A DNA stretch of 64,000 nucleotides from Cyanophora paradoxa CCMP329 (lineage: Eukaryota; Plantae; Glaucophyta). How positions within the stretch are numbered: the stretch's first letter is position 1; each line of letters starts with the position of its first letter. The translations under genes and the position numbers were made by a program. The notes below the pieces were generated by a model, which had not been told where the DNA came from, searched no databases, and worked only from the letters and a program-made list of their open reading frames with translations. The stretch covers positions 62,001 through 126,000 of the forward strand of contig QPMI01000167.1 of assembly GCA_004431415.1 (NCBI GenBank), given 5' to 3'. Shown in pieces: positions 17,188 through 61,545 of the stretch.

Positions 17188-20100
17188 ATGAAGAGCTGGT
17201 TCAAGAAGAAAGAACAGCCCGGCCCGCCGCCGGCCGCAGCGGCGCGGCACGGAGCCGGCGGCGGACCGGCGAGTCGCGGGGCGGCTCCTCCCGCCACCTC
17301 TTCGTCTGCAGCGAAACCGGAGCCCGTTGCGAGTCTCTACATCGCCCCACGGACTCCGGTTCGCCCCGTGGAGCGTAAGGAGCGAAAGCATCAACCTGCA
17401 GACGAGGATGCCACTGTCCAGTTCCAAATGCCTTATAGCCTCCTCGCCGGTGCGCATTGTTTGCGCTCCGGGGCGCTGCGCGCGTGCGGCACCTGTCAGT
17501 ATGAAAACCTGGCCCCAGTGTGCTGGGACCCGGCGCACGAGAGGGATAAGCAGGCTCCGATCGAGTTCGCGGACATCCCTTCCAGCGTGCCGGCGGGGCG
17601 CGGGATGGTCAACTCGGACGCGTTCCAGCGGGCGCTCGGTGAGAAGGAATGGAAAGTGAGTAGCAGTCGCCGCTCGCGACGCCGCTGGCTGCACAACATC
17701 GCACGCGCGCGGGGCGTAAGCGCTCCGCTCGATGATTTGTGCTGACCTCACCCTGCCAGCCGTACTTCCACTTCCTGGCCGACCACGTCGACGGGGACCC
17801 GTACAAGTGCGCGGGCCGCCCCCTGCGCCGCCGGGCCGTCGCTGAGCGGTGCGCGCAGGGAGTTGCTGGTGTTCGGCACGCGGGAGGCGGGGCCCGTCGC
17901 GGAATCCATCGCCGCCTGCCGCAAAGTCATCCCAGAGGCGAGCCGGGCCGGGGCGGGGCGGGGGGCGGGGGCGGCGGCTGAGGCGGGGGCAGATCTTCTT
18001 CGACCCGAACTTCGACCTGGAGGACCCGAAGACGTTCGAGCTGGCGATCCCGAAGATGTACGAGGCCAAGTTCCTCGAGGGGCGCCTCGGCGAGTACCAG
18101 GACGCCGTCGAGGTCCAGCTCATGCGCCACGTCGCCGTCCGCTCCGTCGCCTTCTTCGAGGCCCGCCCCCGCCCCCGCCCCGCCCCGGCCGGCCCCGCGC
18201 GGGGGCCGAGGGTGGCGGCGCGGGGCGCAGAACCTGGAGACGCTGAAGACGCTGAAGCGGGAGGTGCAGCGGACGGTGGTGGAGATCCAGGCGCTGCGGC
18301 ACGTCCTCTCGAACATGGAGCGGAGCATGGTGCACGCGCACCTCCGCGTGGCGCAGCTGCAGCGGCGGCGCCTCAACATGTCCAAGCTGTACGCCTACCT
18401 GAAGATGGCGAGCACGGTGACGAAGACGCAGGAGGCGGTGCAGATGCTGCTCGCGACGAGCCACTACGTGGAGGCCCTCGAGCTCATCGAGCGCGCGCGC
18501 GGCATCATCGCCGACGAGCTCGCCGGCATCCGCGCCCTCCGCTACCAGGACCTCGAGCTCGAGGACGTGCGCGCCACCGTGGGGAGCATGATGGAGGCCG
18601 AGCTCGTGAACCTGCTCGTCGAGGGGAGCGGGCGGCAGCGCGAGCGGCCCTTCCTCCACGAGCGCTTCGCCGCCCTCGCGCACCGCGCCGGCCACGGGCC
18701 CGACACGCCCCGCGACGAGCCCGAGGCCCGCGCCGGCTTCAACCTCTCCCTCGAGGTCGGCGCGCCGGCGGGGCCCGGCTTCCGCCGCAGCATCTCCCTC
18801 CAGGAGAACATCGCCCGCATCGCCGACGCCGTCGAGAGCGCCCGCGACCGCCCGCCCCGCTCCCCGCGCCCCGCCCCCGCCGGGCCCGCCTGGGCCGCCC
18901 GCCGTCGCCTGGTGCGCCCCCCGCGGCGTCGCCGGCGAGCGCGGGGCGGGGCGGGGAGCGAGGGGGGCCCCGGGGGCAGGCGGAGGCGGCGGAGCGGCAG
19001 CAGCAGGAGGCGGAGTTCCGCGTGCGCCCTCGCCCTCCCTCGCCGCCCCCGCCCTGCGCCGAGGGGCGGGGCGGCAGGGGCACGTGGGGACGCTGGCCGA
19101 GCACCTGCTGGGGGCGGGGCGCCTCGGGCACGCCCTCCTCGCCTGCCAGGATGCCGTCCGCCGCGAGCTCAACAAGATCGTCCGCAAGGTGCCCCCCGCC
19201 CCGCACCCCCCGCCCCCTCCCGCCCGCCCCCGCCTCGGCGACGTGATGATCCTCTTACATGTCTTCAAAGTTCCCTGAACTCCCGTGTTGACGCGAATCT
19301 AATCTGATCCCCGCGCCCCGCCCTTGACCCGTCCCTGCCGCGCCGCCCACGCGCTAACCTCCGCCCGCCTCGCCGCCTCCCGCGCCCTCTGCCCCCACTC
19401 TTCAGGTTCGCCCTTTGTCCTCTTCTGCGCGCTACTCCTAGACGGCACGACGTGATGAACCTTTCTATATAGTCTTCAAAGTTCCCTGAACAATCCTGTT
19501 GACGCTTTAAAATCTGATCCCTGCCGGCCCTCGCCACTGCCCCCGCTCCGCGCTCGCTCCTCCGCCCCCGTGCTGATCTGCGTCCTTGCTCGCGCCCGCC
19601 AGGTTCGCCCCGCGATCGCGGACGCTTCCCTCTCCCCCGGGAGTCCACGTGATGAATCTTTTCATTCTAGTCTTCAAAGTTCCCCGAACAGCCGTGTGGA
19701 TGCATGCATTCTGATCGCCTGCCCCTCTCCTCCCCTCCCCGCCCCCTCTTCCCTGCCCCCGTGTCCTGACCATCGCCCTCTCCCGTCTCCCCGCTTTACC
19801 CGGCCGCGCTCATCAGGTCCGCTCCTCCCTTGCCCGCTGCTCCCCCTCCAACGCGCCGCCATGTGATGAGCCCTTCATCTATAGTCTTCAAAGTTCCCTG
19901 ACCCCTGATGACCACTTCTAGCCTGATCGCGCGCCGCGCTAATCCTGGCGGCTGCACCTCGGGGCCGGGTGCGGGCGGCGACTGACCCCGCTGCAGGCGA
20001 TCGTGACTGCGGACGCCGGCCTCGCGGCGATGTTCCCCGCCCAGACCAACGCCTGGCGCGCGCCCCCTCGCTCCTTCCCCCGGCCCCCGCCTCACGCGCC

Positions 20101-22580
20101 CCGCCAGGACGGAGCACGAGCGGGACGAGCCGCTCACGGGGGGCCCGATGGGCCGCTGCCTGCAGGGGATGGACCACCCGCAGTTCGTGACGGTGGCGGG
20201 GTACGTCTTCTCGGCGCTGTACGGGCTGCTCGAGCGCGCCGCCATCGCCCGCGACGTCGTCCTCTCCGCCGTCCGCCCCGCCCGCCCCGCCCCCCGCCCC
20301 AGCGCCCCCGACCCCGAACCCGCAGGTCGCCCGCGCCTCGGCCCTCGCCGCCACCCGCCGCTCCTTCGACGGCCCCGCCCCGCCCCGCCGCTCCTACGAC
20401 GGGAGCGCCCCGCGGCCCTCGGGCAGCGCCTCCGGCAGCGCCGCCGGCGACCCCAGCGACTCCCACGGCGACCGCCGCGTGCGCCGGCGCCCTCGCGCGC
20501 CCGGACGGCGGGGCGTGACGACGGGGCGGGGGCAGAGCGAGCGGGAGGGAGGGTTCGGGGGGACGGCGGCTCGACCTACTCGGACCTCGACCCGTGCGCC
20601 CCGCCCCGCCCGGGCCCCTCTCGGAGCAGCAGCCGAGGCCGCCGGCAGGGCCGCGCAGCTGCGGGGCCGGGGCGGCGGGGCCGAGGCGGGGCTGGTGCAG
20701 CAGGCCGTGGGCCTCGTGGCGGGGGTCTTCGGGGCGGTGGCGGCCAAGGGGGGCAGCTCTTCGAGCAGCGCGCCGCCGTCACCCTCCGCCTCCAGCCGGC
20801 CGACTTCCGCGAGGCCCGCCCGCCCGCCCGCCCCGCCCGCCCCGCCCCGCGCGGCCCCGTGCGAGGCGGGGCGCAGTACTTCGAGTCGGCGCTGGGGTTC
20901 GCGGAGGCGGTGGAGGAGGCGGCGGCGCGGCGGGCCCCCGCGCTGCGGGCGGCCCTCGCGGGGCAGGGGCGGGCGTACCTGGCGGCGCTGCACGAGAAGC
21001 GCACGGCGGCGCTGGGGGCGCTGCTCGAGGGGGAGCCCTGGGTGGAGGCCCCCGTGCCGGCAGAGATCCAGGCCATGGCCGACGCCCTCGCCGCCCCCGC
21101 GCCCCCGGCCCCGCGCCAACACCCCTCCTCCCCCTCGACTCCCCCGCCCCCACGCCCCGACCCGGCCCTCGCCGCCCCGACCCCGTCCGCCCCGCAACCG
21201 CCCCGCCGCCGAGCGCCGCGGCGCCCTCGCCGAACCCCTTCGTCAACGCGCCCCACGCGGAGGCGGAGGGCCGCGCGAGGAGCCCCTTGCCCCCGCATCC
21301 GTGCGCGCCGCCGGCCCCGGGGCGCCGGGGGTGCGTGGCGCGGGTGACGGGGCGCAGGGGTGCAGCCGCTGCCGCTCTCGTCGCGGGCCTTCCACCGGCG
21401 GGGGACGTCGCCCTCGCCCACGCCCTCGCCCCGCGCCTCCCCGCCCCGCTCCCGGCCCCGCTCCCCGCTCCCCGCCCCCACGCACTCCCCACGCCCCGCC
21501 CTCGCCCGCGCGGGGCGCCCGCCGAGGAGCCCCCGAGCCGCCCTCGATGCAGTCCCGCGTGACCGTCGCGGGGCAGCCCTTCGCCGTCCGCCCCCGCCCC
21601 CGGCGCCGCCTCGCGCTCGACTGAGGCGGGGGGCGGCGGCTGGCGCGCAGGCGATCGGGGCGCTGCTGATGCTGGTCCAGATGGTGCACGAGTACATCGC
21701 GCTGGGGGCCTGCTCCCGCCCCTCGCCCCGACGCCGCCCACCGCGCCGCCGACCTCCTCCGCGCCTTCCTCGCCCGCCTCCGCGAGGCCGCCGAGGAGCC
21801 CGGCGCCGCCCTCACCCAGATCGGCCCGCCCCGCCCCGCGCCGCCCCGCCCAGCCCTCCCCGCTGACGGCCGCGCAGCGCTGGCCTCGCAGGCGCTCAGC
21901 TTCCTGCTCGCGCTTCTCCCGCTCCTCGCCAGCAGGCTCCGCGCCGAGATCCCCGCTCCGGCCCCGGCCCCGCAGCGGCCCCCGCGGGGGACGGGGGAGC
22001 GGGGCGGGGGCGGGGGCGGGGCGGAGGGTCACCCGGCGTGCGAGCTGGAGGCGCTGGTGTCGGAGTGCATCGGGGAGCGGAAGGAGCTCTTCGGGCGGCT
22101 CGTGCGGGCTGTGGACGACCGGGTGGCGGCCCACGTGCGCGGCCTCGCGCAGGCCGCCCCCTGGAGCGACCCGGCGCGCATCCCCTTCGGGCCCCTCCTC
22201 CTCCGCGAGGTCCTCTCCGCGCACCGCGCCCTCCAGCCCCTCCTCCCCGCCGACCAGCTCTCCGTCATCTTCGTCCGCATCGGCGGCGCCCTCGCCGACC
22301 GCCTCGCCGACACCCTCTCCAAGCTCAAGGCCCGCCCCGCCCCCGCCCCGCCCCGCCCCGCCCCGGCTGACGCCGCCGCCGCTGCAGCTCTCGGGGGCGG
22401 AGGCGCGGCTGCGGGCGTACGAGGACATCGTGCGCCCCCCCCAGGGGGGCCCCCAGCGGGGCGGGCCTGACGGGGCGCGCGGGGCAGATGTACACGGTGG
22501 CGACGCTGCGCTCGATCGACATCCACGTCGACGGCCTCGCCGCCCTCGAGCGCCTCGCCAAGACACGCTTCGGCAAGTAG
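17188..22580 (+). CDS. VPS54: GARP tethering complex subunit VPS54; snoRNA host gene
   Basis: IFFDPNFDLEDPKTF..RLGEYQDAVEVQLMRHVAVRSVAFFE; VQMLLATSHYVEALELI; YLAALHEKRTAALGALLEGEPWVEAPVP. Confidence 0.85.
19243..19307 (+). ncRNA. Box C/D snoRNA copy 1
   Basis: C GTGATGA 19243, guide GTCTTCAAAGTTC, D' CTGA 19275, C'-like GTGTTGA, D CTGA 19304. Confidence 0.88.
19452..19517 (+). ncRNA. Box C/D snoRNA copy 2
   Basis: C GTGATGA 19452, guide AGTCTTCAAAGTTC, D' CTGA 19486, D CTGA 19514, flanking CGGCA/TGCCG stem. Confidence 0.88.
19649..19714 (+). ncRNA. Box C/D snoRNA copy 3
   Basis: C GTGATGA 19649, guide AGTCTTCAAAGTTC, D' CCGA 19684, D CTGA 19711. Confidence 0.85.
19863..19926 (+). ncRNA. 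Box C/D snoRNA copy 4
   Basis: C GTGATGA 19863, guide AGTCTTCAAAGTTC, D' CTGA 19898, C' CTGATGA 19905, D CTGA 19923. Confidence 0.88.
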
Positions 22581-57552: not shown

Positions 57553-60500
57553 GGGGAGGATATCGTGTGAGGCCACTAGGGGTGCAAAAACGGCCGACTT
57601 TTGAAACTTTTTAAAAACCATGCCAAACATGTCGGGAGACCCTCCCGACACCCCCGGGCCCTGTGCACGCTCGCTTTTTTTTGAAATTATCGAAATATCG
57701 ATATCAGCCTTTTCCGGGCATTATCTGGGGGGGGGAGGAACCAGAACCGAACTTGGCGGATTCGAACCGGGCTAAAAGTTCGGCGACCGCCGGCGAGGCA
57801 GCCAGCGCACAGGCGGGCCAGCGGCGACCAGGAGCGTAGTGCTGCAGGCAGTAGGCTGCTTGATGTTGCCTCGTTGGGCGCCCACGCCACCGATTGTGCG
57901 AAGCACAGATCCGCCAGGTCCGCCGAAGCTCGCAATAGGCAACCGCGATGTTAGAGCTATAGCACCTATCGATAAGTAGCGTTTGCTCAACCTCTCGCTC
58001 TCCGGCAACATCTAGTATTCTATGGGCACTGATTCGATCAGGGCCCTCCGCCTACTTGGTCGAGCTGCGGCGCGGTTTCCCGGAATCCACCTATAGAACA
58101 GTGGAGCAGGTAGCTAGACATAGCTATTGCCGGACTGGAGACCCTCGAAGTTTAGGCTCCGGCCGGGAAACTGGCGCCCATCGCTCTCCCGTGCGCGAGC
58201 CAAGGTCCGCCGCGGCCTAACGCAGCCGCGGAGGACCCGGGAGGCTGCAGAGGTGCTCATATCTAACATGCATGGCCTATTCGTGCAGTCTAAGCCCCAC
58301 GCGCAGGTCCTTCGCGCGAGACTTGATCCGAGCGCAGCCACGCCGCAGCGGAGGAGCGCAGCCCAACCACGCCGCAGCGGAGGAGGCTCATGACTAACAC
58401 GAACATCTCGGAACGGTGCGTGTCGAAGCCCCGCGCCGCCGCGCTCGCGCGCCCCGGTCTAACTGGATCCAACCCCGGCCCGCCTCTCGCAGTCCTCGAG
58501 TCGCCATGGCATCTTTCGCCGCCTCCGAGGTCGCGCATCGCTTGCGTGTATCGCTTATGTCCCGCCAAGCCCCCGCTTCGTGGCCCGCCGCGCCCCAGGC
58601 AGATGCGCTCTCGTGTGCAATCAAGCATGTCATGCGGTTCCAGATGGCATGGCTGCGACGGCGGGGCGGTGCGGGCTGAGATGCCTAGGGCCACGAGACA
58701 CATCTATAGCTCGCGCAGAGCGCGCGTGCGGGCAGCGGCACGCGCCCCCGCCGCCAGCGGCACCTGCTCCAGAGGGCCTGGGGGCACCTGGGCGATTCGA
58801 TTCCGCTGCGAACTGCGAGGGCGCGACGGGCCGCCGCGAGCGCGAATCAACGCTCGCCTTGATAGAGCTTGTGTGGACGCAGCGTGGCCCTGGCGCCCGC
58901 CTCCGCAGAATGAATCCGCAGCGGAGATCGCCGGCTCCTCCAGAAGGCTTGGGGTGGGGGCACCTTCGCGATTTGATTTCGCTCCGCACAGCGAGGGTTC
59001 GCTGGGCCGCCGCTAACGCAGATCGATGCACACCTCGGTAGAGCATGTGCAGATGCATCGCGGCCCGGAGGGGTGCATCCTTAGCGGATATCGCCTGCCC
59101 CTGCACATGCCGTGTACCTGTGTACGTATGTGCGCACACCTGGACGATTTGATCTCGCTTCAAAGGCTCCGCACCGCGAGGGCTCGCAGGGCCGCCGTAG
59201 CGCGATTCGGTGAGCGCATGAATAGAGCTTGCGCGTGTGCAGCGCGGCCCTGGCGCGCGCTTCCCCAGCAGAGATTGCTCATGAGTTCCAGTGAGCCAGT
59301 GAGTTCCTGGGCGACCGGCTGGCCCCAGCAGGCGCTCTTTGAGCCAGAATCATTATCACATGTAGCTATATCACTGCACCAAGATACAGGGTGATCCGAA
59401 GTGTTTTTGGGCCGGACCGGTCTCTTGAATTTTACTCGTAGGACCCTCTCTCAGAGTCTGGGACTTTTCAGTTTTCAAGTTCCAAAATGCCACCCTGCCA
59501 GGCTGACCTGCTCATGATGCCTGATTGAAGCATCAACTCACTCAGCAACGATGATTTCACGTCCCTGGGGGTTTTCGAGGGTGCTGAAGACGCTGGTGGT
59601 GGTACCGAGGGCCGCCGATCAAAGCCTGGGCCCGTATTCAAGAACTACTGGAAATTGGGGGCCCAGATGCCTCCTGAGTGATTCTCGCGCGCCCAGTCGC
59701 ATGCAGCGCTCAGGGCGCAGAACACAAGTCATTTACATGCTTTTGAAACAAAATATAGGCTTGATAGAGCGCTCGCGAGCCTCTGAGGCGAGAAAGCGAA
59801 GCTCCACTAAGCTACGTGGCTAAGCTGCGGCGTCGGCTGCATCGCGGCCTCGTCCCCTCGCGTCCGAGGCGCTCGGGGGCGGCCCGGCGCGGGCCCCTGC
59901 GGCGGGGCGCGCGGCGGGCGGGCGGGGGAGCGCGGGCGGGGCTGCACTGGCGGGCTCGGCGGCGGCGGAGGGCGTCGGCGGGGTCGCGGCCTCGTCCCCT
60001 CGCGTCCGAGGCGCTCGGGGGCGGCCCGGCGCGGGCCCTGCGGCGGGGCGCGCGGCGGGCGGGCGGGGGCGCGGGCGGGGCTGCACGGGCGGGCTCGGCG
60101 GCGGCGGAGGGCGTCGGCGGGGTCGCGGCCTCGTCCCCTCGCGTCCGAGGCGCTCGGGGCGGCCCGGCGCGGGCCCCTGCGGCGGGGCGCGCGGCGGGCG
60201 GGCGGGGGAGCGCGGGCGGGGCTGCACGGGCGGGCTCGGCGGCGGCGGAGGGCGTCGGCGGGGTCGCGGCCTCGTCCCCTCGCGTCCGAGGCGCTCGGGG
60301 CGGCCCGGCGCGGGCCCCTGCGGCGGGGCGCGCGGCGGGCGGGCGGGGAGCGCGGGCGGGGCTGCACGGGCGGGCTCGGCGGCGGCGGAGGGCGTCGGCG
60401 GGGTCGCGGCCTCGTCCCTCGCGTCCGAGGCGCTCGGGGCGGCCCGGCGCGGGCCCCTGCGGCGGGGCGCGCGGCGGGCGGGCGGGGGAGCGCGGGCGGG

Positions 60501-61545
60501 GCTGCACGGGCGGGCTCGGCGGCGGCGGAGGGCGTCGGCGGGGTCGCGGCCTCGTCCCCTCGCGTCCGAGGCGCTCGGGGCGGCCCGGCGCGGGCCCCTG
60601 CGGCGGGGCGCGCGGCGGGCGGGCGGGGAGCGCGGGCGGGGCTGCACGGGCGGGCTCGGCGGCGGCGGAGGGCGTCGGCGGGGTCGCGGCCTCGTCCCCT
60701 CGCGTCCGAGGCGCTCGGGGCGGCCCGGCGCGGGCCCTGCGGCGGGGCGCGCGGCGGGCGGGCGGGGGGCGCGGGCGGGGCTGCACGGGCGGGCTCGGCG
60801 TCCACTGGCGGCGCCGCGGACAGCGGCGTGTCGCGCCAGCGAGGGCGGACTTGTTCTGCGAGAGCATGATGCACGGTGGACAGCGGCGCGCCGCGCCAGC
60901 GAGTGCGGACGTGTTCTGCGAGCGCAAACTATGCTCTTAGTTGTGCGGAACGCTGCTCTGGGTGCCGGCGTCGCACCGAGCTCGCCCCCGCGAAGCGCCC
61001 CGCGCTCTCCCGAGGACACTGCGGCCGCGGTCAGCGGAGGTGCCGCCAGCGGACCGCAAACGCATGTTGGGCATTGTATAGGCGCAGAAGCATGTATGTG
61101 GCACCTTCGGAAGCGATACAGCGGCACCGGGAGCGACGGATCGCCCGCAGTCACCGAAGCCGCGCAGGTCGGCCGTTCGCAAGGCGCGGAGCGTCCGCGG
61201 TGCTGGCTGTAGCTAGCTACGTGCCGGCTGGAACATATAGGACGTGCTGCCAGCGGCCAGACTAGGCCAGGCTCGCCGCGCGGGGCGTGCGACCGCGCGG
61301 AAGGCAGGGTGTCAGGTTGGTCGGCGGCGCGGGCGCCGGGGAGCTAGCCAGCACGCCCAGCTACACGCCTAGTGCTTCCGATACGTGCCCTGCGCTCTCC
61401 TGGCGCGGCGCTGCTACAGTCCGGGCCAGCTGCTTAACAGTTCCTGTACGCCCCCCGAGTAGCTCGGTTTCGCCGCAGGATAATGGATTTCCGAGTCGGC
61501 CATTTTGGGGTATACAAGGGCCTCACACGTATCTCTTCACTCCCC
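57553..61545. mobile_element. Putative non-autonomous DNA transposon (about 4 kb) with imperfect TIRs
   Basis: Left GGGGAGGATATCGTGTGAGGCC..AAAACGGCCGACT versus right AGTCGGCCATTTT..GGCCTCACACGTATC..CTCCCC; gene-free interior; no TSD seen. Confidence 0.55.
59842..60800. repeat. Tandem repeat, about 6.8 copies of a 139-142 bp GC-rich unit
   Basis: TCGCGGCCTCGTCC starts at 59842, 59984, 60123, 60264, 60404, 60544, 60684. Confidence 0.95.

Follow-up and report, generated by a model that had tools for sequence, protein, structure and literature searches.

Candidate Stepwise Removal of Four Back-to-Back snoRNA Introns With Zero-Length Exons in a VPS54 Gene of Cyanophora paradoxa

Introduction

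In several fungal snoRNA clusters the internal exons have been lost, leaving an "intron-intron-intron" structure, as in cluster III (snR41-snR70-snR51) and cluster II (snR57-snR55-snR61) (PMC3596301, PMC5033589), and both nested and recursive splicing with an exon size of zero have been described for the clusters of Candida and Debaryomyces (PMC5033589). Intermediates of 5'-to-3' removal occur with such abutting introns, and Luo et al. were unable to distinguish between stepwise splicing and the use of alternative acceptors in fungi (PMC3596301). Recursive splicing is also known from the ratchet points of Drosophila and mammals, which are located in long introns, depend on a cryptic RS-exon and have no tie to snoRNAs (PMC8605326). 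Plants and green algae possess intronic polycistronic snoRNA clusters processed from one precursor, for which no description of internal splice sites was found (PMC7671301; Chen et al., 2008, as cited in PMC8226300).

The locus described here was found in Cyanophora paradoxa, in a window of 64,000 nt (the whole stretch of DNA analyzed), where a VPS54 gene is interrupted by four back-to-back units with one C/D snoRNA each. This feature is real and probably functional. The original prediction presented it as a candidate snoRNA release system based on recursive splicing and overlooked that abutting snoRNA introns with zero-length exons had already been described in fungi (PMC3596301, PMC5033589), so that the layout as such is not new. 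The locus shares with the fungal clusters the single C/D snoRNA per unit, the acceptor directly followed by a donor, the absence of an internal exon from the spliced product (an 808-nt skip in three studies) and the question whether splicing is stepwise or chooses alternative acceptors. While the fungal clusters yield partial products keeping the 3' units, a single exon-to-19603 contig was deduced here from one run. Furthermore, the fungal hosts are non-coding, their snoRNAs are different from each other and the structure originated by exon loss, in contrast to the coding VPS54 host, the four paralogues with one predicted target, the probable tandem intron duplication and the non-fungal lineage in the present case. 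The VPS54 locus would, therefore, work like the fungal clusters without being a member of this group, because of its coding host, paralogous snoRNAs and probably different origin.

In common with the metazoan ratchet points (PMC8605326) are the juxtaposed AG|GT, the diverged flanks (here among paralogous units), the zero-nucleotide outcome and the location in coding genes, but the Cyanophora interval measures 808 nt in total, with units of 180–217 nt, each containing a snoRNA. The plant and green-algal clusters similarly place several duplicated snoRNA isoforms into one intervening sequence of a coding gene, while every Cyanophora copy is equipped with a separate donor, branch candidate and acceptor. 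Finally, the fungal stwintrons (PMC7138796) are likewise complex intervening sequences of coding genes with consecutive U2 splicing (proposed for the present locus); in stwintrons, however, the donor, branch or acceptor of an external intron is split by an intron located inside it, whereas the Cyanophora units abut each other with all elements intact in the DNA. In the literature covered by the search, outside of which many subscription papers remained, no such layout was found for algae, protists or a coding frame.

Sequence and RNA Data

The stretch was found in 16 runs from four studies, none of them labeled as RNA, and runs X1, X5, X12, and X14 were examined. The RNA data consist of assembled contigs, those listed being 151 nt or longer. 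The LSU rRNA used for pairing was taken from rDNA contigs of other eukaryotes, confirmed by Rfam.

Host Gene and Anatomy of the Interval

The reading frame of the VPS54 gene (KIVRK|AIVTAD, phase 0) is broken by 808 nt at positions 19189–19996 (+). A coding use of this interval was rejected because of stops in all frames. The predicted interruption was confirmed by the sequence together with the spliced contigs, and its division into four units of 217/197/214/180 nt (Table 1) by the sequence; the RNA-supported neighboring introns are 52–104 nt long. The internal borders read TTCAG|GTTCGC, CCAG|GTTCGC and TCAG|GTCCGC, with the donors of units 2–4 directly abutting the preceding acceptors. Re-measurement reproduced these sequences, as well as the distances from donor to C box (54/46/46/46 nt in units 1–4) and from D box to candidate branch A (50/59/55/59 nt), the latter being close to the reported snoRNA optimum of approximately 50 nt before the branch point (PMC8162545). 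Each unit contains its predicted branch-like motif, though these motifs were chosen by eye, and those of units 1–3 are 48/26/47 nt away from the internal AGs; among the local short introns, the seven with a branch-like motif show distances of 9–21 nt. Unit 4 contains a second branch candidate 16 nt past its D box.

Table 1. Positions of the features at and near the VPS54 interval (numbering of the window)
Feature	Position	Strand	Details	Basis
GC intron	17938–17992	+	donor GCGAGC	RNA-supported
GC intron	18161–18230	+	donor GCCCGC	RNA-supported
VPS54 coding exon	19078–19188	+	ends with KIVRK (AAG|)	RNA contig pieces in X1, X5, X14
Intron unit 1	19189–19405	+	217 nt; donor GTGCCC; branch candidate A19357; acceptor TTCAG	donor RNA-supported; internal acceptor from sequence only
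C/D snoRNA copy 1 (C to D box)	19243–19307	+	D' CTGA at 19275; 13-nt guide	
Intron unit 2	19406–19602	+	197 nt; donor GTTCGC; branch candidate A19576; acceptor GCCAG	sequence; acceptor used in the deduced X14 junction
C/D snoRNA copy 2	19452–19517	+	D' CTGA at 19486; 14-nt guide	
Second piece of X14 record 12 (deduced)	19601–19648	+	48 letters	depth bookkeeping
Intron unit 3	19603–19816	+	214 nt; donor GTTCGC; branch candidate A19769; acceptor ATCAG	sequence
C/D snoRNA copy 3	19649–19714	+	variant D' CCGA at 19684–19687, guide intact; 14-nt guide	
Intron unit 4	19817–19996	+	180 nt; donor GTCCGC; branch candidate A19985; acceptor TGCAG	terminal acceptor RNA-supported; internal donor from sequence only
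C/D snoRNA copy 4	19863–19926	+	D' CTGA at 19898; 14-nt guide	
VPS54 coding exon	19997–20055	+	starts with AIVTAD	RNA contig pieces
Next intron downstream	20056–20107	+	donor GCGCGC	RNA-supported

The upstream exon matched Vps54_N with an E-value of 3.8e-6, just under the Pfam cut-off, and a word-based homologue search gave no match. The best relatives of this exon bear both Vps54 domains and, in a search conducted exon by exon, the exons on either side of the interval aligned in order with Vps54-domain relatives, by which homology the host gene is VPS54. Two of the four best matches are other VPS54-like proteins of Cyanophora paradoxa (P0001 and P0004): they are paralogues, 36–39% identical to the VPS54 exon and 22–38% identical to each other, and this low identity suggests the presence of several old VPS54 paralogues in this organism. 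An assembly artefact is unlikely: in the unspliced run X12, possibly the source sample, a single contig (record 8) covers 19220–20272 without differences. Further along the window, at 59829–60800, there is a tandem repeat with a 140-bp unit (6.9 copies, 97% matches).

The Four C/D snoRNAs

The prediction of one C/D snoRNA per unit proved correct: every unit contains one RTGATGA box followed 60–62 nt further by a CTGA box, and all four copies, 64–66 nt long from C to D, possess the terminal C/D and the internal D'/C' boxes, the C' boxes being degenerate. The copies are 67–79% identical in pairwise comparison and align with z-scores of 8–12 against shuffles. The guide adjoining D' forms 13–14 perfect pairs with eukaryotic LSU rRNA and selects C1466 (LSU of rDNA contig L010) under the position-5 rule, so that all four copies are predicted to aim at a single LSU rRNA cytidine for 2'-O-methylation. 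A second guide upstream of the D box is unconserved and matches LSU or SSU over not more than 6–7 nt. The terminal stems were weak in folding, with z from -2.4 to +0.8. Those snoRNAs whose terminal stems are weak rely more on splicing-coupled assembly.

At the gathering level, Rfam gave no match in the 64-kb window. The plant C/D snoRNA snoR160 (RF00203) scored 18–20 bits against the copies, below its gathering score of 42. It shares with them the guide core GTCTTCAAAGTTC and, thus, the predicted LSU site, but in snoR160 the guide is located before the terminal D box, whereas in the Cyanophora copies it precedes D'.

Conservation of the Borders Against Diverged Spacers

AG|GT, and AG|GY as well, occurs in the 808-nt interval at three sites only, all of them unit borders, each positioned exactly 46 nt upstream of a C box. 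In 5000 dinucleotide shuffles, 808 nt contained the pattern YAG|GYNCGC 0.03 times on average, and no shuffle contained it three times. The spacers have diverged, as had been noticed originally: no spacer pair exceeded a z-score of 2.0, which places all of them at, or close to, the level of shuffles. In contrast, the border motif was kept: eight of the nine positions of CAG|GTYCGC are invariant, against 8 of 36 in the spacer following the donor (binomial p 4e-5, in a post hoc test). Both halves of the border, acceptor and donor, are conserved, although this conservation was measured among paralogous units of one locus and the three borders, being copies of one another, are not independent events. 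The distance from border to C box is constant in three units at 46 nt, while the 3' spacers range from 70 to 102 nt, and no AG is present between D box and acceptor in any of the four units, against about 3.9 expected. Judging from the sequence, the borders did not decay along with the flanking spacers. Neither further copies nor similar borders were found elsewhere in the 64-kb window.

Of the internal donors, described originally as matching the local consensus, GTCCGC is present among the nine RNA-supported donors, but GTTCGC, with T at +3, is absent. CGC at +4 to +6 occurs in six of these nine. Three of the nine RNA-supported introns of the VPS54 gene start with GC, and the donors of this gene fit loosely to G(T/C)(G/C)CGC. 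The exon end with the first donor (19179–19199) resembles the border of units 2 and 3 (19593–19613) with 81% identity over 21 nt (family D10), including a common AGGT.

Spliced Contigs and a Deduced Internal Junction

The neighboring introns were spliced in X1, X5, and X14, representing three studies, and spliced contigs of all three contained the exact 808-nt skip with GT..AG ends. Micro-exons at the borders, whose absence had been predicted, are therefore rejected for the mature RNA. Among the joints listed for X1, X5, X12, and X14 there was no internal junction. Of the original predictions of exon junctions to 19406, 19603, and 19817, only the one to 19603 could be recovered, by deduction from X14, with none to 19406 or 19817 among the listed joints.

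The depth table of X14 was fully accountable because only seven records had mapped. Record 12 (151 nt, depth 5.94) has its letters 1–103 on the exon at 19084–19186 and, by the table counts, no loose end; therefore, its remaining 48 letters should be located elsewhere on the stretch. Intronic depth was present in two adjacent bins only, with values of 1.18 and 1.65, which equals 20.06 and 28.06 letters at a depth of 5.94. The 48-letter piece deduced from this (Table 1) begins with the AG of the unit-2 acceptor, and its offset of two letters equals that of the main joint. Record 12 is most probably an exon-to-19603 junction which used the internal acceptor at 19602, resting on one contig from one run with a depth of about 6, possibly a single cDNA fragment. 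Read-through into unit 1 was rejected as the source of the 48 letters, since bins that are already fully explained or zero would then gain 1.76 and 1.06. A repeat at 18155–18202, masked in mapping, is also 48 letters long, which was taken as a coincidence because this repeat cannot explain the intronic depth.

The junction speaks for the use of the internal acceptor, not of the internal donor, and it would equally result from a one-step choice of an alternative acceptor; a template switch across the shared AGGT is a less probable source. The C box of unit 3 follows directly after the last base of the deduced piece (19648), which may reflect the end of a read or point to a cryptic exon of 46 nt. 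In X1, a low depth (about 2) was observed over unit 4 (19823–20024), which was not assignable to a real retained-unit contig and was left out of account.

Proposed Stepwise Removal and Its Alternatives

It is considered rather likely that the interval consists of four functional short introns which are separated by zero-length exons and leave mainly in a stepwise manner, with one snoRNA per lariat. In such a scheme, the exon donor at 19189 would be spliced to an internal CAG acceptor and ligation would set the exon AAG beside the next GTYCGC, regenerating a donor (AAG|GTYCGC); the cycle would be repeated up to 19996, resulting in an in-frame VPS54 mRNA identical to the product of a single cut. 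Each step would free a lariat containing a single C/D snoRNA, or sometimes more than one, positioned some 50–60 nt before the branch point, which would then be debranched and the snoRNA trimmed, and the freed copies would guide 2'-O-methylation of the LSU rRNA cytidine. We infer the 5'-to-3' order, the separate lariats, the use of the internal donors and the expression of the snoRNAs. Stepwise removal is supported by the restriction of AG|GT to the borders and by the position of each of them 46 nt before a C box. It is further supported by the conserved border motif amid diverged spacers, the lack of AG between D box and acceptor, the clean skip in three studies, the deduced X14 piece, the spacing from D box to branch candidate and the fungal precedent with its 5'-to-3' intermediates (PMC3596301). 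Against it stand the absence of GTTCGC from the RNA-supported donors, the unusual distance of the internal branch candidates from their AGs and the fact that, of the three predicted junctions, a single one was recovered, in a single run among X1, X5, and X14.

Alternatively, the whole interval might leave as one 808-nt lariat (19189 to 19996), from which nucleases would separate the snoRNAs as in the plant and green-algal clusters, the internal acceptors being of minor and the internal donors of little use. This is the less likely course, albeit compatible with the mature contigs, which show the full skip only, with the unusual +3 base of GTTCGC and with the deduced 19603 junction, if the latter originated from alternative acceptor use, an option stated for fungi by Luo et al. 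(PMC3596301). However, removal in a single lariat leaves unexplained both the conservation of GTYCGC at three borders amid near-shuffle spacers and the fixed 46 nt. Furthermore, any minor use of the internal acceptors would then lead to dead-end or regulatory products, and the early stops present in every partly spliced product would cost VPS54 expression. If an internal acceptor lacked a functional donor beside it, these stops would presumably lead to nothing but the destruction of VPS54 mRNA. The use of the internal donors is thus favored, since the conserved internal acceptors would otherwise trap the VPS54 mRNA and since the donor halves are conserved too.

A further alternative, and an unlikely one, is that all units are real introns removed in a free or internal-first order, i.e., by nested excision without a strict 5'-to-3' ratchet. 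Nested excision is possible because all borders are CAG|GT and the loss of unit 2 or 3 keeps a border intact: the border sequences permit any order, and the removal of unit 2 followed by unit 1 would also create an exon-to-19603 junction. On the other hand, fungal products lacking an internal unit but still containing unit 1 were never found (PMC3596301), and neither a 19405-to-19603 nor a 19602-to-19817 joint was seen in the present data, which are shallow.

It is also improbable that the constant 46 nt between border and C box mark a cryptic exon with the GT of the C box as its donor, whereby snoRNP assembly would be coupled to splice-site choice; the C box does start with GT exactly 46 nt past each internal border, but no read shows donor use there. 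Least credible is the view that the internal AG|GT are neutral relics of a whole-intron duplication and that the X14 contig arose by template switching during reverse transcription or PCR: duplication alone accounts for the presence and register of the borders, and a switch could exploit the resemblance of the exon end to the border of units 2 and 3, but the 9-mer has persisted between decayed spacers, and the crossover would have to be confined to four letters at splice sites.

Probable Origin by Intron Duplication and Implications

The presence of four paralogues and of AGG at both ends of the intron (AAG|G...CAG|G) makes a tandem duplication of the whole intron a reasonable inference. A snoRNA intron would have been duplicated through these AGGs, a crossover between the two ends creating an exon-intron-intron-exon structure with a CAG|GT border, and later unequal exchange could have added further units. 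The wider proposition, that this duplication made zero-length exons in a housekeeping frame which are kept by selection, with recursive splicing as the normal route to both the mRNA and the snoRNAs, is evenly balanced between true and false.

If stepwise removal is correct, the locus exemplifies how the copying of a whole intron can raise the dosage of a snoRNA gene while the protein stays unchanged, with the spliceosome ratcheting through the array, which would also represent a route to intron gain at a single coding position. The splicing of snoRNA introns with zero-length exons would then extend from the non-coding hosts of fungi to a coding gene in another lineage, and recursive splicing of short introns would be present in a eukaryote that is neither animal nor fungus and that arrived at the layout of fungi along a different evolutionary path. 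The locus offers a compact 808-nt four-step substrate with the host mRNA as a direct readout. With it, the question posed in fungi, whether splicing is stepwise or uses alternative acceptors, could be settled, and the rule of one snoRNA per lariat at about 50 nt from the branch could be tested beyond animals.

The LSU Guide in Other Sequences

A metagenome scan for the guide returned plant-like tandem snoR160 pairs and one locus from a GC-rich eukaryote. Borders at a fixed distance were found in none of them, including the tandem snoR160 copies, unlike in the Cyanophora units. In the GC-rich eukaryotic metagenome contig (L001, 9080–9172; also L005), the LSU guide likewise occurs in a C/D RNA, which is apparently intronic, scores below the Rfam thresholds and has no internal CAG|GT borders. 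The name snoR160 is also in use for an Arabidopsis H/ACA RNA (PMC7464842, PMC2875012), which is unrelated to RF00203. The eukaryotic LSU rDNA motif was matched by at least 97 stretches in bacterial and archaeal reference assemblies (L009–L088); the two that were checked, L010 and L058, are eukaryotic rDNA units with 5S and represent contamination of these assemblies.
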